DNA of 64,000 nucleotides from Auanema rhodensis (lineage: Eukaryota > Animalia > Nematoda), in assembly GCA_964057225.1 (NCBI GenBank), contig OZ059900.1, positions 9,734,001-9,798,000 on the forward strand, read 5' to 3'. Shown here in pieces: positions 23,880-43,198 of this stretch. The number at the start of each line of letters is the position of its first letter. Positions within the stretch are counted from its first letter, which is position 1. Position numbers and translations under genes: made by a program. Below the pieces are notes generated by a model. It worked only from the letters and a program-made list of their open reading frames with translations. It was not told the DNA's origin and did not search any database.

Positions 23880-26800
23880 TTATTGGTTTTCAGGAAATGA
23901 GAAATTAATCTTATTCGAAAAATCGTTATCGTCATCCTCGTTGTAGAAAATATCGTTTGCATCATGAGCGTCATGAGCGTTGTCGGCTTTCGGAGCTTTT
24001 TCTGCAGTAGCAGTGTTATTACCTTCATGTACAAATTCATCTCCTGAGTATGGCTGCATTCTAGCTCTATCATTTCCATTCTCATCTAGCATGCCAGGTA
24101 TGTGGTGTTCGGTAGCTAGGCGGTCACCATCATTTAATGGAAAATCGGCTGCGTTTGAGTTGATAGAAGTATCATCCTCTTCTTCGGTATCTGAAGAAAG
24201 TTGAATGACGGTTGTAATTTTGGATGCTTCTGCACTGGATGAGCTATTATTGGTACTAGCAGCATTTTTTGATTAGATTTAGGCAAATATCCTTATCGTT
24301 TCAACATAAAGTTCATTCTGGTTGGAAAGGGCTTTTTTGTTGTTGTTATAGTTACCTTCAACATTATTTGTCAACGTGAGAACATTAGAGAAGTCAACAC
24401 GAGCGTGATATCTGTTTCTGTTCTGAATGCGATCATCAGTACGAGTTTTCTGAACAATTGACTAAATTTGATACGCACAGATTTCTTACTTTGATCATAG
24501 CTTCAGTTCCAAATATATGATTCTGTGGTTGAACAAGTAGATTTTCTGAAAAAAAAAGTATTTTTTGGCGTATTAGAATAGCTAAATGTAGTACCATGGA
24601 GATTTTGAACTGGTTGGTTTACTCCGTTGTTCTGCAGCTGAACCTGCTCAGTTTCATTATGTTGTATGGGAATCGCAGGCATCTTTGGTATGGATTCCAA
24701 TGAATCATCTGTGTTATTAGTATTATCATTATAAAACATTAATGGAGGAGTACAAGGACGTGGTTCCATTTGAGCTTCAAGATTATCTGCTTCTTCGTCA
24801 TAAAGATTGTCTCTAGTTATAGAAAAATGTTCCCCCATGAAAGTAGACTCATTAGCTAACTCATCATCAGTAAGCCGATATTCGGAAGTCAGACAACTGT
24901 GTTCTGTTTTGAGTGCGCTGTTAGCAGGCTCACAATCAAGACGCATATAGTCAGGAGTAGGAGCACGTTCTTCTATTTGAATTGCACCATCAGAGAGCAT
25001 ACGAGCAGGAGCGGAATGACGTTGTTGCATTTCGGCTGTAACATTTTCAGTCTCATCCTCAAAACCCAGATATTCAGAAGTAGGAGAACGTTGGTTTCTT
25101 TGAATTGCATCAACAGGCGTATAGGCAAGACGTGCATGTTCTGGAGTATGAAAAGGTTGTTCCATTTGAGCTGCAGCATTTACAGTCTCGTCTTCGAACC
25201 CCATATGCGGAGGAGAAGGAGAACGTTCTTCCATTTGATCTGCACCATCCGAAGGCTCGTTATCAAAGAGCATGTAAGCAGGGGTGGAACGACGTTGTTG
25301 CATTTCAGCGACAAGACTGTGAGCTTGATCATCAAACCGAATGTTTTCAGGAGTAGGAGAACGTTGGTCTCTTTGAATAGCATCAACAGGAGCATAAGCA
25401 AGTCGCATATGTTCTGGAGTATGAAAACTTTGCTCTATTTCAAGTGCAGCATTTTCAGTCGCGTCTTCGAACCCCATGTGCGGAGGAGAATGAAAACGTT
25501 CTTCCATTTCATCTGCACTATCAGTAGACTCGTTATCAAAGAGCATGTAAGCAGGAGTAGAACGAAGTTGTTGCATTTCAGCGGCAGAGTTGTCAGTTTC
25601 ATCATCAAATCGCATGTTTTCAGGAGTAGGAGAACGTTGGTCTCTTTGAATTGCATCAACAGGCGCATAAGCAAGACGCATATGTTCTGGAGTATGGAAA
25701 GGTTGTTCCATTTGAGCAGTAGCATTTTCAGTCTCGTCTTCGAACCTCATGTGCGGAGGAGAAGGAGAACGTTCTTCCATTTGATCTGCACCATCTGAAG
25801 ACTCATTGTCAAAGATCATTCCAGCAGAAGTAGAACGACCATGTTGCATCTCGGTTGTGACGTTGTCAGTCTCATCATCAGAACGCACATATTCAGGAAT
25901 AGGAGAACGTTGATCTGTTTGATTTCCATCAACAGGCGCATAAGCAAGAAGCATATGTTCTGGAGTATGAAAACGTTGTTCTGATTGAGCTGTAGCATTC
26001 TCAGTATCATTGTGAAATCTCATGTATGTGGTATTAGAGGAACGGTGCTCGGTTTGCGGTGTACCATAAGAACAAAGGTTTTGATGCATCTGAGCTGCAG
26101 CATTAGTAGTCTCATTGGAAAATCTCATGTATGCAGCAGCAGGGGAACGGTGATCCGTTCGCGGTGTACCATAACCAAGATCATGTGGCTCCGTTGCAGG
26201 TGTACCATAAACAAAGCGATGTTGTTCCGTTGGAGGTGTACCATAAACAAAACGATGTTGCTCTGTTTGAGTTGTAGTTTCACTACCACTAGTTACAATC
26301 TCGCATTGTGTGTTTGCATTAGTAGGTGAACGGTACTCCGTGGGAGGTGTACTATAGGCACGACGATGCTGCTCCATTCCAACTGCCAAATGGTCCGCAT
26401 CATCATCAAAACGCGTATATGCGGGAGTTGGAGAGCCATGCTCTGATTTTGGTGGACCATAAAAAAATCTATTATCATAATGCATATATGCAGGAGTAGG
26501 GAAAGAACGTTGGTTTTGCATTGATGACGCATAGGTGTTAGAAGATGTTTGAAAAGGTGCATACGAGAATGCGGTAGAAGATTGTCTAGTTGGTAGCATA
26601 TTGTTACCAATGTAGACAGATTGCTGAGACATACTATTAGCTTGAATAGCAGTAGGTGATTCAGAATACATCTGATGAAATGGAGAAGACGTTTCGTCAA
26701 TCCGTGCTGTGTTGTTACGATCGGTATCATAGCTTTCATCAATAGTTAAAGGATTATTATCTTCAAAGCTCAACAACATATCGAGAGAGGTGGTAGTAAA

Positions 26801-27197
26801 GCGAGGTTGCAGAAATTCACTGTTGCCAGTGACAGGTCCTACATTTTCTACTGTTTGAGGATAATTCCCCATGGGCAGCATTGACCAGGAACCATCAGTG
26901 CGCGGACATGAATGCTAAAACAAAACAAATGTGAAACAAGAAATTAGTATGAAAACATACTTGTCTAGGAGGTACAAACTGAGAAAAATGCGGAATATAG
27001 TTGTTATCAAAGGTTCTGCCACGACCATTCCCATAGTGACGACGACCATGAGAATAGAAGCGATATGGATGAGCACGCGCAGGCGCAAATCTCGAAGCAG
27101 AACGATAATATGAATTGTTCATTATGTTTACATCATCAGAATTGCGCGTATTTCGATAGTTGCAACGCCGATGAGAATGTCGACCGCGCTCAGCCAT
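23880..27197 (-). CDS. Large (~1000 aa) disordered orphan protein with R/G/Y/N-rich N-terminus and acidic [ST]P-containing repeats; about 5 exons
   Basis: 792-aa ORF 24503-26881; exon 1 MAERGRHSHRR..PPRQ|GTATGT splices in frame to HSCPRTDGSWSMLPMG; downstream exons ENLLVQPQ..MIK, KTRTDDRIQ..NVE and DTEEEDD..FPENQ* join by GT-AG (last acceptor uncertain). Confidence 0.8.
24990..25981 (-). repeat. Coding tandem repeat, 273-bp (91-aa) unit x ~3.6, each built of four ~23-aa subunits
   Basis: CTGGAGTATG recurs at 25141, 25414, 25687, 25960 (exact 273 spacing); protein unit starts EQxFHTPEH. Confidence 0.95.
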
Positions 27198-30160
27198 GAT
27201 TCGACTAAATATGAAAGTCAAATTGAAAAAGAAGGCGTTGCTTAGACCTGCCTTAGTTTGCAGCTGTTCAGGAAGTACTTAAGCGGATCACTGAGACTAA
27301 ATGCCAAAATATAATAATGAGTTAGAATGTCTCATATGAAATCATATGAAGAAATAAAATAAGAAGATATTTTAATTGCAATAATATATAAGTTTAGTTT
27401 AGAAATATTTTCAGACAATATTTTCAACTTTGAATAAAAAATTATGAAAAGATTCCTTCCAAAAGTCTAATTGAGATGTAGTCTGACTCTTTTCAAATAT
27501 GCATGAAAGAATTATAATTGAATTTATTTATAATTCGAAAAAGTTTTATAAAAAGAAGATCAAAATTTGAATTTCTCATGGAAATTAATAGAAATTCTTA
27601 ATAGATTTGTACTTTTATGAGATTGTATACAAGTTTATATGAATGAAAATCGTTTTTCAAATGAATATTTAGTATAAAATATAGTAGAATAGATTATAAA
27701 GCATGAAATTAAAAAATGAAATATAATTTTTCAACTGATTAAACAAAAAAATTTTTGTGTTTGAAATCTGATTTTCATTTTTTCGAAAAGACGACACGCC
27801 TACTTTGGTAGATAAACAAGACGTTTGGTGGATTATAACCAAAAACATAAATCAGTTGATGATCATTATATTAGCAAATAATAAGTAAAAATAGACAACC
27901 ATATCTTGATAAACAATGAAATATGGAGCTAATTAACAGATCCAGTAATTATTGAAGAAAATTTATAAAAAAAAATGAAATAATGAAATATGTGTTTTTG
28001 ATATGGCATAAAGTTACAGTAGGAAATATATTTCATTTCATAAGTTAACAAATTCTAAAATATCTGAATTTAATGAAGTTTATTATATTTATAAAAAGCT
28101 TATTAACGAGTAAATACTGAATATAGAGAGAAAATAGAAATGTCGGATAACTCTCTGAACATGTCAGTAAATTGGTCAATTAGACATTTCTTGCAAACAT
28201 TACATCAACAAATTATAAAAGAATAGGCTATGAGTTACAAGTTATTTGTTAACTTTATCGTTGATGAGCTAGGATATCATCTTGTTCATGTGGAACTGTA
28301 GTTTATCGAAATTTTCATTTGGTTCCATATCTTCTTCTAGTCAGAAAGAATGAAAGAAAAGGCAGATGGAATATTTATATTTTCGTATTATTTAATTTTC
28401 TGGATTACTTTTACAAACAAATAATATTAGAAATAATAATAATAATTATTATTATTATTGTGATTTAAATAAAAACAGCAGCATGTTTTTGTATTGCATA
28501 CGTTGTAAAAAACTTTTTAAAAGGTAAGCTTTGTAGACAGCAGAATAATAATGTACAGAAAAGGAGGTGAACATAGAGGTATTTCTTCATAAAAATAGTT
28601 TTTTAGATAAATCTTACAAAATAAAAAAACTGATTCCAAGTTTAAGAAAATAAAAATTTTAGAGATCAGCTTAAGAAAAAACAAAAATTCCGCCAAATTT
28701 ATTGAAGTGTAGAAGTGTTTGAATGCGAATTTGTTGTACAACTTTCTAGTTTTCTTGTGCACCATTTTGGGTGATCAATCATGAATCATTGTTTTGTTTC
28801 AGAAGATTTTCATTCATATTTTCATTTTTACGTGATGTGAGTGATAGTTTCATTACATATTTGAACATTTAAAAATATTAAATAGACCATTTGCATATGT
28901 ATCCGGAATGTTTCTGCCTGTGTGGTCTTACATGCTAAGAGTAGTAACATGATTGTCAATTATAACTGATTGGCACCAGAGATACAGGCTGACAACGGAA
29001 CTTTATAATTTCCTGTGATCTCTACACATTGAAAATACATTATCCCGCCTAATCTAGCAATTCATCCAATACTTTAAGTATCATAAGATAATCTATATAG
29101 TATATTTCTTATTGTTATTCTAGGATACTATTCAAAGCTAAATAGCATGTGTTTTATACTTTTCTTTTTAAATTATTCTCTATAATCACGTGCTTATAAC
29201 TTATCATCACAAAGAGATGATGATTCCTTAATACATGAATTAAGATTTGGATCTCGAGTTTCAATGATAATACCGCAATGTGAACAATGATTAGCTAATG
29301 AAGAGTTATTTTTCCAAACCATCTCGAAGAAGCAGCAAGGTTTGACTAATATTATTTCTGCAATTATATAATTATTTCTTTAATACTCATAGCAGTTGAT
29401 AATTCAATTGCAGCCATGATTCCTGAAACAATGCTTCTATTTTCAAATCTATAAGAAAATAAATTTGTTGGTCAGGGATAACTATGACTTGTTTTGTTCA
29501 GGATAGTCAGAAGTAATATTTAACAACGGAATATTGATATTCATTAAATATTTGTTGACAACAATTTGGCACATGGAAAGCTTCTGGCATGTAAATAATA
29601 ATTATAAATGTTAATATTATTTAAATAATATTAACAGACCGTATCGTAAGAAAAACTGAACAAAAAAATTTGAAATATTTTGTCATGTAAGCTACGTATA
29701 TAGGAATTGCAAAACGGACGGCATCAAGCTGGTCTAAATAAGATTTTATTGAGTAAAATCTGATGAATTATGAAAATTCTTCAAAATATCTTACAAAATT
29801 TTAAATAAATTGTAAAGATTCATCAAACAAGCTGTATGTACGCTGTATACAATACAAATTGAAAAATACGTAATTAGAGCATTTAATTAGTAACCAAACC
29901 TAACTCATGTACGGAATGCAGTATAATCATAAGATGTTGAATTTTTAGCTTCACTTCCGTTACAGGACGCTTTTGCTCCTTTTTGCCTTAATTTATTATG
30001 AAATAGCAGTAATATTTCTTAATTTATTATGAAATAGCAGCATTTCTCGTTAATTTTGGGAAACTTTCGTAATTTTATTTGATTTCTTGTTTTTAATTGA
30101 TTTAATTGATTTTAATTTTAATAAAGGTACTCATAGAGCTGAAGTTTGGTGCTTTTGAAG

Positions 30161-30853
30161 ATGTCTGCATTGGTTAGTCTCTATTAGTTCATCTGTCTGT
30201 AATTTTTATTTGTTTCAGGGCGAAAAAGCAGCATTTTACGAGCACGATAATATATTTCAAGTTGAGGAAGAAATATTCACGCGTGATCAAAGGGAACAAA
30301 TCGTTCATCGCACCTTCGAAATCAAAAATATTCGAGATCGGAAAGAGGATCGTGCTAAGCGGGTGCATTGCTTGCAGAAGGTCAACCCACGGCTGGTGAA
30401 AAGTACCAGAAAGAAGCTTTACGCACTGGATTTAATAGAAAGCGATATGATGTCCGATCTTCATTCAATCAATGATCTTTCATTAGACATGATTCGATTA
30501 AGAACGACGATTGGTAAGATCAGAACTCATATTCAAGAACAAACTCAGCATATGAATGAAGAAGAGAGATCAACTTACCTTATGCAAATGGAATATCGTA
30601 AATTTCATTCACTCGTATCGGAATACATGAATTTTTTCTGCAATCAACTTGTTCTTTTCATGAGAGCTCGTGAGCCAGTTCCTATTGAAATGGTGGAAGA
30701 GTTTATCGGTGCTCGTCATTATTTCTCCATCATGAGAAATGGCATGAAATCAACTTAGTGAGCTTTTAGCTTTTTTTTTGATTGTCATAATATTATATTT
30801 TCAGCCTGGAGAATTGCAAGCTGTTTGATAAGATCAGAGCAACCAACTATTGA
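30161..30853 (+). CDS. Uncharacterised helical protein, 'FCNQ' family member 1; exons 30161-30172, 30219-30757, 30805-30853
   Basis: MSAL|GEKAAF...MKST Y|LENCKLFDKIRATNY*; 46- and 47-nt GT-AG introns; AATAAA at 30911; motif MEYRKFHSLVSEYMNFFCNQ. Confidence 0.85.
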
Positions 30854-31257
30854 ACTGCATTTTCGATATAATTTTATATAATAAAATTATATATGATACT
30901 AATTGTTACTAATAAAACGTTTTTTTTAAATGCGTGATTGAAACATACAACGAAACTTTAAAACTTCTGAATTCTAAGTATTATCGTTTATAATATTTTC
31001 CGACATGATATTGGTCTCGAAAAGAAATTATTATAAATTCTCTTTTTTTTTCAAAAATTGGGCAAAACATCTATGATATAGTATTAAGCAAGCTCGCAGT
31101 CTTTAATCTCTTGTTTCTCAATTGTGAACAAATCTATATACATTTACATGAGACATAGTTACAACACCATGGTTTCAAATGAAAAAAACCCAAAAATGAG
31201 AAATAATATGTTGGAATCGCTACGTTAAAAAACAAAAAACATGGCCCTTGGCATTTA

Positions 31258-31866
31258 ATGTCAATGTTTTCTCAGCTTTTAGCCATTTTCCTATTTTTCT
31301 GTATAATAAGCGAAATACAATCTGAGGTAAACATTTCATTTTTAATAATTACGTTTTGCTGTTTTCAGAAATTGTTCAGTTTAAAGTTTGATTATCAACC
31401 TGTTACTACTTATCATTTTAAATTGAAATCAGCTACGGGTTTTAACATGACCTTTGCATCCAGTTATGACGTGAATATTATTCAATTTGTGTTGGGAAAT
31501 TACAAGGTTGGATTGTTATTTATTTATTTCTTGAAGTTTATGGTCTAATTCAAGATTTTGCATACGAGTTTGATGGGAACCAAAATGGAAAAAGGAATGG
31601 TTTCATTGCCAACTACTTTTTACACTGGTACTGAAAATTGGACTATTCATTATTTTGATAACAAATCTTTTACCGGATTTGTGGTAAACGTTGATCTAGT
31701 AAAGCTGTAATACATTTTGTGTATTCAGATGTTTACGGATTATTCCAATACAAATGTGACAATTCCGATAAAAACTAGTTGGACATACGACAAACTGGCG
31801 ACACTGAAGTTTACTGCCGTAGGAGGATACTTTATGAAATATGTTAAAACATGCAAGTCAGGATGA
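31258..31866 (+). CDS. Secreted beta-strand-rich protein, 157 aa, copy A; exons 31258-31326, 31369-31506, 31555-31683, 31729-31866
   Basis: Signal peptide MSMFSQLLAIFLFFCIISEIQS; three phase-0 introns (42, 48, 45 nt); frame conserved in the diverged paralog; N-glycosylation sequons NMT, NWT, NKS, NVT. Confidence 0.85.
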
Positions 31867-32493
31867 TTTTGAAAAGTCAATCAGAAAAGTAATGACAGAT
31901 TCAATTATAAAAGTGTTTTCCACATGTCAAGCTAAGCTGTAATTTGTAAAACTTTTGTATTACTGTATTCCACCTAAAGTTGAAAGCCAGAGAGTCATAT
32001 TCATTACTTAATGCTTAATATCTCATAGATAATTAAAGTGTTTTCAGACAAAATTAATGAAATTTCGATATATTTTTCTATACTTCAATAGATCTTTAGC
32101 ATTTCTTTATATTTTTTAGTTGAAATCAAATGCTGTGTATAAGGCTTACGTAATATATTTGTACTTTGGTACATTGTCTGACAGACGACTTTCTTATTTG
32201 CAAGTTGAATGTTGAGCAGAGTTTTTAACTATTTCGTGTTTGTTAGTTAATTTGTTATTTCTATAATAATTAGAAATAAGCGCAGATATTCAACAAAATT
32301 ATGAATTGGTTTAGAAGATCTGATCTTATTTTGGCATTTTTGAAAGTCAATTGTTATTCTAAGTCCAATTAACAATTTAATGTTTCACGTTTCACGGAAT
32401 ACCTGAAGCAATAAAAACCTCGTATACGTTCCGCATCCATATTACTTCAGATATGCTCTACTATCTCCCATATAACTTATAATTAATAAACAT

Positions 32494-32616
32494 TTAGTTA
32501 TGAACCATAGGAAGAGTTACACATATTGAAAGTACTGCAACAAGTGAGAATGCTACAGCAGCATATGATACAAAGCGATAAGCATTAATGTGATGACCAA
32601 GATCTTCGTTAGACAT
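32494..32616 (-). pseudogene. Truncated cuticle collagen 5' fragment, head-to-head with the intact collagen
   Basis: Reads [40 protein letters not shown]; nucleotide-identical to the intact gene from GCTTATCGC to CATAACTA, then similarity stops; no Gly-X-Y downstream. Confidence 0.9.
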
Positions 32617-32651
32617 GATTTAGTCTGCTGTTGCATAATAGTTTCAAAGTC

Positions 32652-33059
32652 TTTATATACCCGTCATTTTCATGCGAAAACTGTGTAGAAAACTGCTTTC
32701 ACTACAATATTTGTTTGTTTCTCCTTCACTACCTGTTGTAGAGGTTCAATGTTGCAAAGAGTATCGAAATCTATATAAAGTTTTTGTTTCGATTATGTAA
32801 AAAACAAGATTTAAATATGAAACAGAAGATATTAAAGTTTTATTACATATGGTAACAATTCAGTACAACTTTTAGTTTTTTTTGATGGATGAGCATGGGA
32901 TCTGAAAAGATATATTCATTTAGTATTTAATTAAACATTAAACTATGCTTTTGATTTTCTCTTTTAATTACCCAACTATAAAAATAATTACACATGATAG
33001 CTTTCTCACTATTTTAAGTTTCATTTAAGTTTCTTCCGTATTTGAAAATCTTATATAAA
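32652..33059. promoter_or_regulatory. Bidirectional collagen promoter with two outward-facing TATA boxes
   Basis: TATATAAA on - at 32652-32659 (36 nt from ATG 32616) and on + at 33052-33059 (35 nt from ATG 33094). Confidence 0.65.
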
Positions 33060-33093
33060 GAAGGCAATAACTTCAAAGCAAACCAAGGGCATC

Positions 33094-34142
33094 ATGTCTT
33101 ACGATCTTGGTCATCGCATTAAAGCTTATCGCTTTGTATCATATGCTGCTGTAGCATTCTCACTTGTTGCAGTACTTTCAATATGTGTAACTCTTCCTAT
33201 GGTTCATAACTATGTGTACCATGTAAAGAGATCAATGAACAGAGAAATTCAGTTCTGCAAAGTAAGTGCTTTCCTTCATTTTCTTCTTTTTTCGACTTCT
33301 TCATATACATTGTTTATTAATATTTTCTCTTTTAGTCTTCTGCTAAGGATATTTGGACTGAAGTCAATCATTTGAAAGATGCTCCAAGAAACAGAACTGC
33401 TCGCCAAGCAGGATATGAAGTCGATGAAGGAGTTCAACAAGACCCTCCACGTGGTGGAAGAAATGGATATGTAAAGCCAGGAAACTGCAATGCTTGCTGT
33501 CTTCCAGGACCACAAGGTCCAGCTGGAACTCCAGGAAGACCAGGAACTCCAGGAAGACCAGGAGCCCCAGGAATGCCAGGAAACCCAGGAAAGCCATCTC
33601 AGACTCCATGCAATCCAATCACTCCTCCACCATGCAAGCCATGCCCTGCTGGACCACCAGGACCACCAGGAGCTCCAGGACCAGCTGGAGATGCCGGAAT
33701 CCCAGGAAACCCAGGACAAGATGGCGGATTTGCTCTTCCAGGACATCCAGGACCAAAGGGACCACCAGGACCATCAGGATCACCAGGAGCTCCAGGACAA
33801 CCAGGACAACCAGGACAAGATGCTCCAAATGAGTACCCAGTCCCAGGACCACCAGGACCAGCTGGACCACAAGGACCACCAGGACCATCCGGACAACCAG
33901 GACAACCAGGACAAGATGGACAACCTGGTTAGACTTGCTTTTCAGAACTAAGATAATAGAGATTTTTAGGACAAGCTGGACCAAAGGGACCAAATGGACA
34001 ACCAGGAAACCCAGGACCAGACGGTAACCCAGGAACTCCAGGACAAGCTGGACAACCAGGAGGACCAGGAGAGAAGGGAATTTGCCCCAAGTACTGCGCT
34101 ATCGACGGAGGAGTCTTCTTCGAAGACGGAACCAGACGCTAA
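33094..34142 (+). CDS. Nematode cuticle collagen (col-1/dpy-13/col-34-like group); exons 33094-33261, 33336-33927, 33970-34142
   Basis: Col_cuticle_N-type start ([27 protein letters not shown]), RTAR furin-like site, CNACCLPG, Gly-X-Y blocks, TPPPCKPCP interruption, [24 protein letters not shown]. Confidence 0.98.
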
Positions 34143-34466
34143 ATCTCACATCTCAAATAAACATTTCAATCTTATATGCTTTATGAATTTCAACACTTTG
34201 GCACAGGGGCTCAAATCTATTTGATTCTGACTATGATGCATCTACAAACATTTTTGTTGCCTAGATTGAGTTATTTGAAATCTCATATGCGTTTTCATTT
34301 TTTTATAGAAACCACTGTTGATGAAAGAGTTGTATACTATATAACTAGTTGAAAATCAATTTATTAAAAAACTAAAAACATGAAAAACAAATCACAGAAT
34401 GAGAATAACATGATTAGACAACTAGAGAAACAGGATAGCTTGACATGGTATTATCCTTCTTCATAT

Positions 34467-35013
34467 CTATGGTTTAATATCACTTCTAAAATTATTATAC
34501 TTTAGTAATTATACGTATAGTTATGAAAACTTACACATTTTCGTTGATATTTGACAACATTCTCTTGAAATATGCACAAGTTTCTTGAAATTCGTCCAAT
34601 AACGTGATTGGGATTGGAATTCCAGCTTCGTTTAAAACATTAATTTGATTACAAAAGAAATTTATATATTCATGCTGAAGAGAATAAAGTTTCCTAAATT
34701 CCATTTTGCAAAGTTCAACGTCTTTCTGCTTTGGATTGGTTTTCTTTAGTAATTCCGCTTCGATTCTAGCTTTCATCTCAGCTATCCGACTTTTTGTATT
34801 TGCGACTTCAAGCAATTTGTGTTGGTTTCGCAATTTTTGGGTTTTGATCTCCTGCCTAAGTGTAGTTATTTCATCATAAAGTTCATCAAATTTGGCTTCA
34901 TCAACAGTAGAATCAGATTCAAGAGCTTCGAGATCTATTGGATAAAACAAATCTTCAAACGTCTCCTAAGAATATATTATTCACAAGAAAATAGAAAAAC
35001 AGTAACAAACCAT
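34467..35013 (-). CDS. 'FCNQ' family member 2 (short, coiled-coil N-half); exons 35013-35011, 34965-34535, 34485-34467
   Basis: M|ETFEDLFYP...NINENV|SDIKP*; ATG-only first exon, 45- and 49-nt introns; motif MEFRKLYSLQHEYINFFCNQINVLNEAGIPIP. Confidence 0.8.
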
Positions 35014-35838
35014 ATTGAATTATAAATAAAATTAGCAGAAGATGGATAGATGACAACTCAGTTAATTATAGAAAATAATACAAAGAAATCAAAAAATATA
35101 TTTGGTATACGATTCAAATATTATATTTTGATCCCGCGCATGAGCAGGGCGCTAATTACATTGAACTTCAAGCACATCAGGTCACCGTATTTAAGGAGAA
35201 AACAAAACTAGGCGATCCTGGTGATCATACTATATAGAAACGAATTTCATTGGGAGAACAATATCTAACTCCAACTTATGGGCGATATTGGCAAAAAAAT
35301 GTTCATGATTCACTATGTGATGTACTCTGTAGAACATAGACTCTATTCACACCCATATGCGGTACGTTGAAGAGATTTTTGTTCTATAGTCACATGATTA
35401 ACAAGTAAAATCTTCATCGCTACGGGTCTAACAAGACCCTATATTAATTTTTGGATTCTCACTATTCTTATAGTGAGGAAAATATTAATTTGTTACCGTA
35501 ATTCATGGGAAAACCAGAAGTATTATTTCAAAACTTGAAAGTTGAAATCTAAACTAGAGTAAACACTGATTATATATTCTTTGACTTTCGATAATGACAT
35601 AACATGATAAACATTATATAATTAATTCTCCAATTATGGAATGAGAATTGTTAATTACCAGAAAATTTTTGAAAATTTGTCCATTCTTCATCATTATTTC
35701 CACTGTTTCATTCAGAATCACACATTCATTTCTTTCTTATATTTTTCTTTATTTTCTCTTCTATAGTTATACTAATTTTTTACAGGCAAACAAAATCGAC
35801 TATATTCACACTCTACAGTATAATAAACTATATTTAGC

Positions 35839-36519
35839 ATGGTTAACTATTTTGCTTTCATAATTGCTTTAATATATTGAATTTTAGTCATTCAGAAGTC
35901 GTTCCCGCCGTAATTATAATCAATTCATCAATAGTAAAAAGGGCTACGATCAAAACTTGGAAAAAGTTATTTCTGCTCACAAAAGAAATTTTACAAGAAT
36001 TTCTGATGAGAGACGATATCGCAATGAACTGCTTTACATTGTGAAACAGTTGGATCCAGATATCGCTAAACGAATGGTAGAAATAAATTCTATTTTGAAT
36101 AAGAGGGGTGATAACCTTCTTAACGAGTTTCTTTTCAAAAATCTAGTAACTGTTGAAGTGAACAATGCCAAACACAAGGCGCTTCGGATGAAAAAAATGG
36201 TTGAGCTCAAGGTACTGAACATGACAGTCGAGGAAAGATTCGCATACTATATGCAACTTGAATACCGAAAACTGTTTTTATTGATAACAGGTTATATGAG
36301 ATTCTTGTGCAATCAAGCAAACCAATTTCTTCAAGCTGGTGTTCTTCCTCCGCCTGGGTTTTTGAAAGAGTTTTCTTCGTTCAGAGCTCATTTCCAGAAA
36401 GTGAAAACATATTTGACGACAAGAAGGTAACTGCTTAACTGTTTTTAACAATATTTCAAAATTTGTTTTCTAGCGATGCTCTACGTCTATTATTTTCTGA
36501 GAGGAGACATAATCCGTGA
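35839..36519 (+). CDS. 'FCNQ' family member 3; exons 35839-35841, 35888-36426, 36474-36519
   Basis: M|SFRSRSRRNYNQF...YLTTRS|DALRLLFSERRHNP*; ATG-only first exon; motif LEYRKLFLLITGYMRFLCNQANQFLQAGVLPP. Confidence 0.8.
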
Positions 36520-37639
36520 AATATTCTTATATTTTGAGTTTTTTGCTTTGTATTGATGTTCAATGAAATGTTTCTTCAAACATTAATGATACAAATTCAT
36601 TCACCTTCAACCACATAATTAGTGAATATGAGAGAGAGAGATTAATGAATAAATTATGATAAAATGAAATTATATCCAATGCTAATGCTAGTATTGATAA
36701 TTTGAAAATATCCCCCAACGCTTCTCAAACTGATAAATTGAAATTAGAATACAATTAACAGATAAATATTATTGTTTACTTCATGATTATATATTATAAT
36801 TTTTATTTAATTGGAATCTTATTAATCACCTAAATTCATCCAATGCTTTCAAATCTTTCTATTCATCTATGAAGAAAAGATTTTCAGTTTTTAATAAGAT
36901 TTTATTCTCAAAATTGTGAGAAGAACGTTGTGTATCCTTCAATTGGATAATAACAAAGATAGACATAGATAATAAGATACGGTATCAGATATAAACCATG
37001 TCATCGAAGTTATGCAAAACATCTTTCGTTGTAGTGATCTATCAAACCCGTAAAATTTATTTTTGGATTCTCACACAAACACCAAGTGAGAAGTATATGA
37101 AGCAAATCTTATTGTTGTTTAAAAATCAATAAAAACGGTAATAAATCTACCGTATGAAAACCATTTGAAAACCAAAAATGGTTTTTCCTGGCGCGCAAGG
37201 TTATGTTTACGTGACAGTTACTACTATTGTTCATGTGGTATTTAAGTTATAATAATGACAGAACAATACACGTCTGGTAACCTTTTATGAGAAAATAACA
37301 GAGATATTTCTGCATGAGTCATTCATTCCCATCTAGTTCCTTTTTTTCTTTTTGGCAATGGTATCGTTACGCACACTCCGTGCCCTCTTTCCCAATGATC
37401 AGAAAGCTATTATCTTTCGAAATACAATTAAATATGTTTATTTCTCTGCTGGTACATGAACTCGCACAGATGAGAGTCTGTATTTTTGAGTAAAAAAACC
37501 CATTTGCTCTCATGATTATCTGATTGGGGGGAGTAGGCGAAACGATCCGAAACCAGCCCTTCTTTTCTTTTCAGTTTTTTTTTCAGTTTAAACAACTGAA
37601 TTGTGACCATTTTTAACAAGCTGATTACCTATATATAGC

Positions 37640-38200
37640 ATGGTTAATCCTCTTTGTTAATATTCGTGTTAATTAAAGGATTCCAGACGTTCAGAGAAAT
37701 ATTCCCTGCTCATTATGAACAATTTCTCATTAATAAGAGATTTTATTTTTAGAATCAGAAACATATGATAGCCATCTAAGAAACATTGCGATAATTTCTG
37801 CTGAAAGGCGACATCGTAGTGAGCTGGTCTATATCGGCCAGCACTTGGAGCCACCTATCGTTCCTCGAATGAAAGATTTTTATTTTGAAATAGATGCTAA
37901 TTAAGATACAAGAGAAGGTTGCTTCGTGAGAATCATATGAACAATTACTGATAGTTGAAATACGTTAAATACAAAAAAAAAGGCTCAGAAGAGAGCAATG
38001 ATGGAAATTAAAACTGAAGATATTAGTATGCAAGACAGCTTCGTATACCTCATTTTCGGCATTGAGAATTGTTTTGAACATTTCATCTGCTTCGAATTAT
38101 ACTAAAAAATTGTTCATCAGTGATAAAATTTATCATTTCTTTTCGGAGATTAGACTTAATTGGTGAACTATTAATTTCCTTTCTACTGTTCTTAGTGCGC
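37640..38200 (+). pseudogene. 'FCNQ' family pseudogene (paralog of member 3)
   Basis: TAGCATG|GTTAA first exon as in member 3; TFREIFPAHYEQFLINKRFYF*N, SHLRNIAIISAERRHRSELVYIGQHLEPPIVPRM and KKKAQKRAMMEIKTEDISMQDSFVY align to member 3 (SFRSRSRRNYNQFINSKKGYDQN, AHKRNFTRISDERRYRNELLYIVKQLDPDIAKRM, KHKALRMKKMVELKVLNMTVEERFAY) but with stops and frameshifts. 3' end approximate. Confidence 0.8.
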
Positions 38201-39010
38201 TTACATTTTGTTGTTGAGATAAATGAATGGTTCGGCAATTAGATAAAACAATCTTTTGAGGCAGATGAGATTATTGAGAAATATTTCAGAACCATTGGTT
38301 AATTTTTAAAAATTAGGTTCTATATAGCTCGATAACTAGGAACGCTTATTTTGGTTTTCTGAATTGACCAGCTGTGCTGAAAGATGACATAGTGTGCTTA
38401 CAGTTCAATGTAATTAGCGTTGAGTTTTAAATTAATACTTTTGAATACTTAGACGTTCAGATATAAGTATATATAATCTAAAAATCTGTTAAAAGATATA
38501 AAGAGTGAAAAGTAAGATTTTGGACGGTAAAATCTGATGGATTATGAAAATTCTTCAAAATATCTTACAAAATTTAAATTAAATTGTAAAGATTCATCAA
38601 ACAAGCTGTATGTACGCTGTATACAATACAAATTGAAAAATACGTAATTAGAGCATTTAATTAGTAACCAAACCTAACTCATGTACGGAATACAGTATAA
38701 TGATAAGGTGTTGAATTTTAAGCCTGACTTCCGTTATAGGACCCCGACTTGTGAGACTTTTCGTTCCGTTTATATTTTTTTTATTATGAAATGGCAGTAA
38801 TATTTCTTAATATATCATAAAATGGCAGCTTTTTACCTTTATTTATTATGAAATAGCAGTAATATTTCTTAATTTATTATGAAATAGCAGCATTTCTCGT
38901 TAATTTTAAGAAACTTTCGTAATTTTATTTGATTTCTTGTTTTTAATTGATTTAATTGATTTTAATTTTAATAAAGGTACTCATAGAGCTGACGTTTGGT
39001 GCTTTTGAAG

Positions 39011-39703
39011 ATGTCTGCATTGGTTAGTTTGTATTAGTTCATCTGTCTGTAATTTTTATTTGTTTCAGGGCGAAAAAGCAGCATTTTACGAGCACGATAA
39101 TATATTTCAAGTTGAGGAAGAAATATTCACGCGTGATCAAAGGGAACAAATCGTTCATCGCACCTTCGAAATCAAAAATATTCGAGATCGGAAAGAGAAT
39201 CGTGCTAAGCGGGTGCATTTCTTGCAGAAGGTCAACCCACGGCTGGTGAAAAGTACCAGAAAGAAGGTTTACGCACTGGATTTAATGGAAGATGATATTA
39301 TGTCCGATCTTCATTCAATCAATGCTCTTTCATTGGACATGATTCGATTAAGAACGACGATTGGTAAGATCAGAACTCATATTCAAGAACAAACTGAGCA
39401 TATGAATGAAGAAGAGAGATCAACTTACTTTATGCAAATGGAATATCGTAAATTTCATTCACTCGTATCGGAATACATGAATTTTTTCTGCAATCAACTT
39501 GTTCTTTTCATGAGAGCTCGAGAGCCAGTTCCTATTGATATGGTGGAAGAGTTTATCGGTGCTCGTCATTATTTCTCCATCATGAGAAATGGCATGAAAT
39601 CAACTTAGTGAGCTTTTAGCTTTTTTTTTGATTGTCATAATATTATATTTTCAGCCTGGAGAATTGCAAGCTGTTTGATAAGATCAGAGCAACCAACTAT
39701 TGA
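39011..39703 (+). CDS. 'FCNQ' family member 5 (recent duplicate of member 1)
   Basis: Same 3-exon structure as 30161-30853 at offset +8850; 10 amino-acid differences. Confidence 0.85.
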
Positions 39704-40147
39704 ACTGCATTTTCGATATAATTTTATATAATAAAATTATAAATGATACTAATTGTTACTAATAAAACGTTTTTTTTAAATGCGTGATTGAAAAATACAA
39801 CGAAACTTTAAAACTTCTGAATTCTAAGTATTATCGTTTATAATATTTTTCGACATGATATGGGTCTCGAAAAGAAATTATTATAAATTCTCTTTTTTTT
39901 TTTAAATTGCCTAAAACACCTATGATATAGTATTAAGCAAGCTCGCAGTCTTTAATCTCTTGTTTCTCAATTGTGAACAAATCTATATACATTTACATGA
40001 GACATAGTTACAACACCATGGTTTCAAATGAAAAAAACCCAAAAATGAGAAATAATATGTTGGAATCGCTACGTTAATTTATTCTAAAAAGCGATTTAAA
40101 GGTCCATTAAATAGGTTTTGATTGAAGAACATGACTCTTGACATTTA

Positions 40148-40770
40148 ATGTCAATGTTTTCTCAGCTTTTAGCGATTTTCCTATTTTTCTGTATAATAAG
40201 CGAAATACAATCTGAGGTAAACATTTCATTTTTAATAATTACGTTTTGCTGTTTTCAGAAATTGTTCAGTTTAAAGTTTGATTATCGACCTGTTACTACT
40301 TATCATTTTAAATTGAAATCAGCTACTAGTTTCGAAATAACGCTTTTCTCTAGTTATGATCAGATGCTCGTTCAATTAACGGTGGGAGGACGCATGGTTT
40401 GTTTCGTTATTAATTTATTTTTTTGAATTTTTATTATTATTATGAATTCTAATTCAAGATTATGCATTCAAGTTTTGTGGGAAACAAAGGTGAAACTGGA
40501 ATGTTGTCATTGCCAGAAGCTTTTTCCACCGGTACTGAAAATTGGACTATTCATTATTTTCATAACAAATCTTTTATCGGATTTGTGGTAAACGTTGATC
40601 TAGTAAAGCTGTAATACACTTTGTGTATTCAGATGTTTACGGATTATTCAAATACGAACTTCACGGTTCCGATAAAAACCAGTTCGAAATACAACGACAT
40701 TAAGAAATTTGAGTTTACTGCCGTAGGAGGATACTTTATGAAATATGTTAAAACATGCAAGTCAGGATGA
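40148..40770 (+). CDS. Secreted beta-strand-rich protein, 157 aa, copy B; exons 40148-40216, 40259-40396, 40459-40587, 40633-40770
   Basis: Same exon lengths and phases as copy A; about 40 of 157 residues differ by manual count. Confidence 0.85.
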
Positions 40771-41502: not shown

Positions 41503-42386
41503 TCAGTTCTCTGGATCTTTGAACAAGATGTCACTTGTATCTTCGTCATCGTATTCTTCATCAAAATCGTCTTCATCGGCAGCTCCTTAATAAGAAAAAT
41601 AACTTTTCTTGTAGCGATAAAATGATTACCGTCTAATGCTACCGAAGCCAATGCATCATCAAAAATGTTCACCAACATCAAAAGCCCGATCGAGGAAACT
41701 AAATAAACGAGTGAAAACAAAGAAAGAACAGTGGTCCCATACAGTCTACATCGCTGTTATCATCACAAGACGGCTGCTGCAATGGAATAGATTCCGCGTA
41801 AGAAGAATCGCACATATTGTTTAAAATTGTATATTCAATTTCATTGTCTTCTGACTCATCAACTTCTTCATTACTTTGCTCAATATTCTCACCATCAGTC
41901 AGATTTCCCTATGAATTACATATTTTAAATGTCTTGAAACGATAGAAAGATACATTTTCGATACAATCATTCCGATGAGCTTCTTCACCATCTTCAAGAT
42001 CACTCTGAATGCAGATTCTTTTGCAACATGTAGGCTCAACAGCGTTTTGATGTGTACGTTTCCGTTCGGGCAGGGACAGTGTAATCGGAGCATTTTCTAT
42101 ACATTGCTGAAGAATAGCAGGATTCTGATAAGTTGAATCAGTAAGAGGATTCTGATAAGTCGAATCAGTAGGAGGATTCTGGCAAGTCGAATCAGTAGAA
42201 GGATTCTGACAAGTCAAATCAGTAGGAGGATTCGGACAAGTCGAATCAGTAGGAGGATTCTGGGAGGATTCTGACATGTCCAAGCAAGGAACTACAGAGT
42301 CATCGCCAGCCATCTGGAAAAGTTCATTAAAAACTAATTTTTTATCTTTAGCTAACAACAAGTTGCTCCTCATCTGAATGCGACAT
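41503..42386 (-). CDS. Acidic orphan protein with 9-aa QNPPTDSTC repeats; 5 exons
   Basis: MSHSDEEQLV|MAGDDSVV..CIEN|GNLTDGENIEQSNEEVDESED..VD F|SSIGLLMLVNIFDDALASVALD G|AADEDDFDEEYDDED..DPEN* joins in frame across four short GT-AG introns. Confidence 0.65.
42119..42262 (-). repeat. 27-bp coding minisatellite x ~5
   Basis: AGGATTCTGACAAGTCGAATCAGTAGG-type unit repeated; encodes QNP(P/S/L)TDST(C/Y). Confidence 0.9.
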
Positions 42387-43198
42387 ATTTGGTATTGATT
42401 TTGAAGAATCTTTGGGATATTCTAAAATTGAAATTAAAATATTTATCTAGTTGAGTGATTTGTTTTTCCTTGATTGAGGAAGAAATATAAGCTGTTTACA
42501 AGCAAATAAACACTGAATAATTAATGTGAGCTTATCCCAAAATATTATTCAAATAACAAATTAAAGGTCTAAATTAATTACGGTGCTCATCTTTTCGGGG
42601 CCGGTAAGCTTAAATTCATTAGTAAATTAAGAATTGAACTTTTGTTTTATTTTGTATAAGTTTTCTTATAGTTTGGATGAAATTGACAAATATCGATCGA
42701 TCTCATATATATAGTTTTCAAATTTTACCTTTCTTCTTAAAAATTTTAATATTGTAACCATTTATCGTTGGTGTCTTCTATTAATTTTTTGTGTTACTAA
42801 AAATATTCTAAACGTTGACAATGAAGTGTTTTCTATTTAAATATTGTTGAAATTGATTGTAAAATTTGTGAAATTGTCAGAATATTCCATTAAATTAAAA
42901 TTATTTGAGCTAATTGAATGAATACTTATAGAATATAATTTCTGCAGGTGTAAATATATTATTTTATATATAATTTATAATTATAATTGATATTCATGAA
43001 AGAAATTTAGAATTTTATTTGAAAATTTTAAAATAAAAGTTTACAAGAAAAGCAGCGAACAGGTGTGATATAAACTATGCTGATTGATAAATTCGTTTTT
43101 TTTTGTTTCACGACAAGTAGTCATAGTTGGTTGTTCACTGCCATTCTTAAAGTACTGCTGACATCTTTTCATTAGCTATTTCCCGCTCTTCATTCAAA

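Follow-up and report, generated by a model that had tools for sequence, protein, structure and literature searches.

The 64,000-nucleotide stretch of the Auanema rhodensis genome analysed here (contig OZ059900.1, positions 9,734,001 to 9,798,000; hereafter the window) has a GC content of ~31% and carries a cluster of small genes, designated A to D, together with one decayed copy of the C type (Table 1). They are referred to as FCNQ genes after a conserved C-terminal block, which is present in all four long open frames, and tblastn with each of the four proteins found no further copies of the family in the whole window. Genes B and C stand head to head with 825 bp between them. The frames remain open for 140-180 codons, far beyond chance, given that ~8% of random codons are calculated here to be stops at this base composition. 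A first-pass annotation of this DNA had proposed four intact genes and a pseudogene at these positions, and the open frames, the C-terminal block and the tblastn matches all agree with it. Its description of a five-member cluster stands for the number of loci, all five of which are real. A and D arose by recent duplication, however, which reduces the effective family to three lineages (A/D, B, and C with the pseudogene).

Table 1. Positions of the FCNQ genes, the decayed copy and the duplicated segments in the window
Feature	Position	Strand	Length	Details
Gene A	30161-30853	+	199 aa	exons 30161-30172 (MSAL), 30219-30757, 30805-30853; open frame 30210-30758
Gene B	34467-35013	-	150 aa	exons 35013-35011 (ATG only), 34965-34535, 34485-34467; open frame 34531-34950
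Gene C	35839-36519	+	195 aa	exons 35839-35841 (ATG only), 35888-36426, 36474-36519; open frame 35957-36430
Decayed C-type copy (pseudogene)	37640-38090	+		tblastn with C, 43-44 bits; DNA alignment to C
Gene D	39011-39703	+	199 aa	exons 39011-39022 (MSAL), 39069-39607, 39655-39703; open frame 39060-39608
Segmental duplication, copy 1	29753-32115		2.4 kb	gene A and downstream signal-peptide gene
Segmental duplication, copy 2	38527-41019			gene D and paralogous signal-peptide gene

Gene structure and transcription

Transcription was assessed from the contigs of four RNA runs, aligned at a likeness of at least 97% to the region 34300-40000, in which 9-13% of sequence words were found in the runs. 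Coverage of the pseudogene and of intergenic DNA in this region was zero in all four, an internal silent control indicating that the signal derives from RNA. For gene B, the contigs of runs X1-X3 (depth 32-42) are spliced across introns 34486-34534 and 34966-35010, in a transcript extending from 34443 to 35104, and removal of the second of these leaves the ATG alone as the first coding exon. For gene D, splicing of intron 39023-39068 was seen in all four runs, giving a first exon that encodes MSAL, and intron 39608-39654 is removed in run X4 only, with a 606-nt contig across all three exons. The splice sites predicted for gene A, which lies outside the aligned region, are identical in sequence to those of gene D. 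Gene C is covered by a single low-depth contig (36261-36426), which ends exactly at the predicted donor 36426, and its first intron is a prediction only. The RNA-verified introns measure 45-49 nt.

The micro first exons of the first-pass annotation, consisting of ATG only or of MSAL, are thereby confirmed in RNA contigs for B and D, respectively. The phase-2 intron that it placed before the C-terminal tail was recovered in all four genes, within the 37th codon after the glutamine of CNQ, and this identity of codon and phase provides independent support for common descent.

Transcripts of gene B carry 1-4 differences from the assembly. At position 39429 all four runs have C, the base of copy A, vs T in the assembly, on an otherwise D-type transcript; this mismatch is either a strain polymorphism or an A-to-D gene conversion in the sequenced strain.

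Homology, duplication and decay

Comparison of the translated loci by tblastn in the window gave 94% amino acid identity between A and D, 59 bits between A and B (E 1e-13), 52 bits between A and C (E 6e-11), 50 bits between B and C (E 1e-10), and 43 bits between C and positions 37767-38090 of the pseudogene (E 4e-8). The four-way alignment contains 15 invariant columns, one of which is a proline at the first helix break, the others forming a C-terminal pattern of ~60 residues, E-[YF]-R-K-x3-L-x3-Y-x2-F-x-C-N-Q-x6-A-x4-P-x5-E-F-x6-F. This distribution matches the divergent N-terminal halves and common C-terminal block described previously, to which is added a loss specific to gene B: ~57 residues, which in the other three genes make up the second long helix, are absent. 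Judged by sequence together with gene structure, A, B, C and D are homologous.

The copy at 37640 begins at an ATG and retains the ATG|GT start context of gene C. The homologous frame is interrupted by three in-frame stops, the CNQ block is gone, and the motif has decayed to ...IENCFEHFICFELY followed by a stop; as read from these sequence changes, the copy is a genuine pseudogene belonging to the C lineage. The recent duplicate pair, the pseudogene and the loss of a helix in B indicate evolution by birth and death, as the first-pass annotation had proposed, with tandem or segmental duplication, segment loss and pseudogenisation all involved.

The duplication that produced A and D is a mosaic in blastn, with 97.4% nucleotide identity across ~1250 bp around the FCNQ gene (29979-31228) and 88.6-88.8% in both the 5' flank and the downstream signal-peptide gene, a pattern of identity that suggests gene conversion or layered duplication. 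The signal-peptide gene is multi-exon, with its ATG at 31258 and at 40148 in the two copies, and has no Pfam match. No flanking inverted repeats, as a sign of mobile-element origin, were found, and upstream of A, B, C and the pseudogene the three lineages share no promoter words of 8 nt or longer. A 31-nt tandem unit (TTATTATGAAATAGCAG...) lies at 29971-30056 and 38759-38906, ~105-250 bp upstream of the start codons of A and D, with ~2 copies before A and ~4 before D, and could be a regulatory repeat of variable copy number.

The joint duplication of A and D with the same orphan secreted-protein neighbour raises the question of a role in genetic conflict or the germline, either as a toxin-antidote-like cassette with the signal-peptide gene or as fast-evolving meiotic or germline structural proteins, a kind of role already raised in the first-pass annotation. 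Known toxin-antidote elements of Caenorhabditis are adjacent orphan gene pairs, and the FCNQ family is likewise tandem, fast-evolving and orphan, with a pseudogene, a recent duplication and a patchy identity suggestive of gene conversion. Such a role is nonetheless improbable, given that B and C have no signal-peptide neighbour gene, that positive selection left no sign beyond one non-significant ratio near 1, and that the pattern would be no less typical of an ordinary orphan family. No result of the analysis favours a germline, meiotic or conflict role in particular. A more specific form of this proposal is slightly less probable again, in which the FCNQ module would be a new domain, A or D with the co-duplicated secreted-protein gene would form a two-gene conflict cassette (toxin-antidote-like, or an immune effector with its regulator), and B, C and the pseudogene would be relics of earlier rounds.

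Predicted proteins and the search for relatives

The predicted proteins are hydrophilic (grand average of hydropathy about -0.6) and have neither a signal peptide nor a transmembrane segment, the maximum Kyte-Doolittle mean over 19 residues being <=0.86, in agreement with the intracellular location assigned to them at first pass. Their isoelectric points range from 4.9 (B) to 10.3 (C), and their net charges before the motif and from the motif to the end are 0/+2 in A, -5/-3 in B and +12/+7 in C. AlphaFold2 was run on the four-row alignment and its output viewed as secondary structure only, without coordinates. The models are all-alpha, as the earlier description of helical proteins anticipated: in A, with a mean predicted local distance difference test (pLDDT) score of 78.7 and a predicted template modelling (pTM) score of 0.43, the helices span residues 6-58, 60-112, 117-152 (the motif helix) and 159-181, and in B (pLDDT 72.7, pTM 0.45) they span 23-75, 78-114 (the motif helix) and 120-143. 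In the predicted layout a long helix or hairpin leads into the motif helix, which a PxP turn connects to a final helix carrying EF......F. Sequence divergence is unrestrained in the N-terminal helices, and the C-terminal module of ~60 residues is kept.

Sequence searches returned no relatives. Scanning the four proteins against Pfam with hmmscan at E<=1 gave noise only, the best scores being 12-17 bits vs cut-offs of 24-40 and falling on a different family for each paralogue. A word-indexed search of 5.8e9 clusters found no relative of protein A, and with the four-way alignment at E<=10 it yielded 2345 word-sharing candidates, none of which scored. Exhaustive search of 1.84e9 protein representatives with a hidden Markov model profile found no true relative; its one match, an unrelated tandem-repeat protein, was rejected as spurious because it matched six times over 22 profile positions. 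A sequence profile search of PDB gave nothing below E 0.17, comparison of A, B and C with the ESM Atlas gave best scores of 0.68, 0.75 and 0.55, respectively, amounting to low recognition, and a literature search on the motif strings found no paper. As a positive control, an exon of a neighbouring gene, which encodes a nematode cuticle-collagen N-terminal domain and collagen repeats, matched >120 nematode proteins with a best identity of 65%, from genera including Haemonchus, Ancylostoma, Caenorhabditis, Pristionchus and Aphelenchoides, which indicates that the database holds many nematode proteomes, but not that of this species or a close relative.

The first-pass annotation had suggested a fold comparison by AlphaFold and Foldseek, and this gave all-helical models with generic hairpin matches only; searches of PDB, AFDB clusters, AFDB Swiss-Prot, BFVD, the ESM Atlas and VIA-align wide recovered generic helical hairpins and nothing else. 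Among the AFDB clusters, two nematode proteins, O02208 (207 aa) and A0A0N4VLP6 (165 aa), gave weak candidate matches with probabilities <=0.20. The recurrent top structural neighbours, never significant, were ESCRT-III/Snf7 and PspA/Vipp1, and it may be asked whether the FCNQ family is a highly diverged member of such a known helical-hairpin superfamily, in which case its proteins would form membrane-remodelling polymers. Entries of ESCRT-III took ranks 1-4 and 6 in Foldseek against PDB and ranks 9 and 11 in AFDB clusters, and the first-ranked fold in the ESM Atlas was CHMP2b, with template modelling scores of 0.52/0.57 over 129 residues. The size of ~200 aa and the helix order of A, C and D, in which a long antiparallel alpha1-alpha2 hairpin precedes two shorter helices, also resemble the ESCRT-III core.

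These matches are, however, confined to the generic hairpin (residues ~10-115) and lie outside the conserved FCNQ module, and no structural match of the four-helix core to ESCRT-III rises above the helical background. The Snf7 profile (PF03357) did not match any of the four proteins in the Pfam scan, the net charges of A, B and C do not follow the basic N-terminal and acidic C-terminal asymmetry of ESCRT-III, and B, which has no helix 2, has no hairpin. The assignment to ESCRT-III was rejected on the lack of significance of the matches and on profile, charge asymmetry and hairpin, and a distant membership in a hairpin superfamily of this kind is considered very unlikely. Other generic antiparallel coiled-coil hairpins, including prefoldin, the seryl-tRNA synthetase arm, CheZ, EsxA/B and spectrin-like repeats, have no motif in common with the family. 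Matches to them reflect a common arrangement, are no evidence for common descent and imply no function.

Selection, interpretation and neighbouring genes

Synonymous sites are saturated between the three lineages (synonymous divergence, dS, 1.1-1.9). In the conserved block, the proportions of non-synonymous and synonymous differences between lineages are 0.41-0.46 and 0.57-0.69, respectively, the latter saturated, and the ratio of non-synonymous to synonymous divergence (dN/dS) is 0.31-0.57, values consistent with purifying selection on the C-terminal module as far as can be read from the coding sequence. The A/D pair is separated by 11 non-synonymous and 3 synonymous changes, and the resulting dN/dS of 0.90, based on 14 changes, is non-significant and uninformative on constraint.

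The explanation favoured here, with a probability of about 0.6, is that these genes are real and expressed and form a taxonomically restricted family, evolving by birth and death, that encodes small soluble all-alpha proteins of 150-199 aa. The first-pass annotation had placed the motif outside all named families, which is borne out by the empty results from Pfam, PDB, the profile search and the ESM Atlas. Its claim of lineage specificity holds to the extent that searches of the protein databases returned no relatives, and does not reach further, as discussed below. Like the orphan tandem families that are common in nematode genomes, the FCNQ family consists of small clustered genes with ~47-nt introns, for which the protein databases searched yielded no homologues. 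It diverges rapidly outside one conserved block, includes a pseudogene and a recently duplicated pair, and may have undergone gene conversion. Within the reach of these searches, the E[YF]RK...FxCNQ...PxP...EF module and the first coding exon limited to the start codon set it apart from the families described in Pfam, PDB, AFDB clusters and the ESM Atlas.

Several observations weigh against this explanation. Taxonomic restriction rests on negative searches of annotated proteomes and not of the genomes of close relatives, and, with the paralogues matching each other at 50-59 bits, a significance floor of ~40 bits in a search of 1.8e9 proteins could miss true orthologues in other genera. The AlphaFold2 models rest on an alignment of four rows and have pTM scores of 0.43-0.45, so that tertiary packing is uncertain. 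Gene C is almost silent in the four RNA runs, and the coding divergence of A and D equals that of the surrounding non-coding DNA, with no measurable constraint in this recent pair.

The last two of these points, together with the A/D ratio, one copy already dead and homologues found nowhere, would also fit genes that are transcribed but dispensable, a young or dying orphan family drifting to pseudogenes without a selected role. This alternative is unlikely, because three lineages with saturated synonymous sites keep the 15 invariant residues, open frames 150-199 codons long and an intron at one shared position and phase, and because the pseudogene demonstrates how fast stops build up in the absence of constraint. 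B and D are, in addition, well expressed and correctly spliced.

As to mode of action, the most likely though still tentative proposal is that of adaptors without enzymatic activity, cytoplasmic or nuclear, which would bind other proteins or oligomerise. Because the conserved aromatic and leucine residues recur at intervals of 3-4 positions (invariant L, Y and F being spaced as in a buried stripe), they are proposed to form the packing core of a C-terminal helix-turn-helix module, which may pack against the long helix or hairpin at the N-terminal end. The polar residues of the invariant cluster (R, K, C, N and Q) make up a candidate conserved surface, which could contact one partner shared by the whole family, and the long helices, which vary, may serve self-association or paralogue-specific contacts.

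If the interpretation as a restricted family is correct, the FCNQ genes represent one more undescribed lineage-restricted family in the large orphan fraction of nematode genomes. They would provide a clean, small example, with RNA-verified gene models and an unusual first coding exon consisting of the start codon, in which one module is maintained amid remodelling of all other parts of the protein, a whole helix among them. The family by itself opens no long-standing question, and its value would rise sharply only if expression or genetic evidence linked it to germline conflict or to the co-duplicated secreted neighbour.

The remainder of the window contains further genes and repeats. Two cuticle-collagen genes stand head to head at 32490-32616 (-) and 33094-34100 (+). 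The first exon of one is 97% complementary to that of the other in an inverted repeat of 115 nt (32490-32604 vs 33103-33217), which suggests that the 5' exon recently underwent inverted duplication or gene conversion. Neither an Rfam nor a tRNA scan of the window gave a hit. A Pfam scan of 83 open frames identified, elsewhere in the window, GOST_TM (2 exons, E 4e-17), MXRA7_helical (E 6e-15) and a 2TM domain (E 3e-6). A single open frame of 792 aa at 24503-26881 (-), with ~41% GC and no Pfam match, is repetitive, rich in Ser, Thr, Pro and Glu, and probably disordered, being built of repeated '...RSPTPE.MRFDDETDN...AEMQQ...' units. At 42088-42263, within the open reading frame 41912-42421 (-), a 27-nt unit occurs five times in tandem at 85-90% identity and, lying inside an open frame, would encode a 9-residue peptide repeat.

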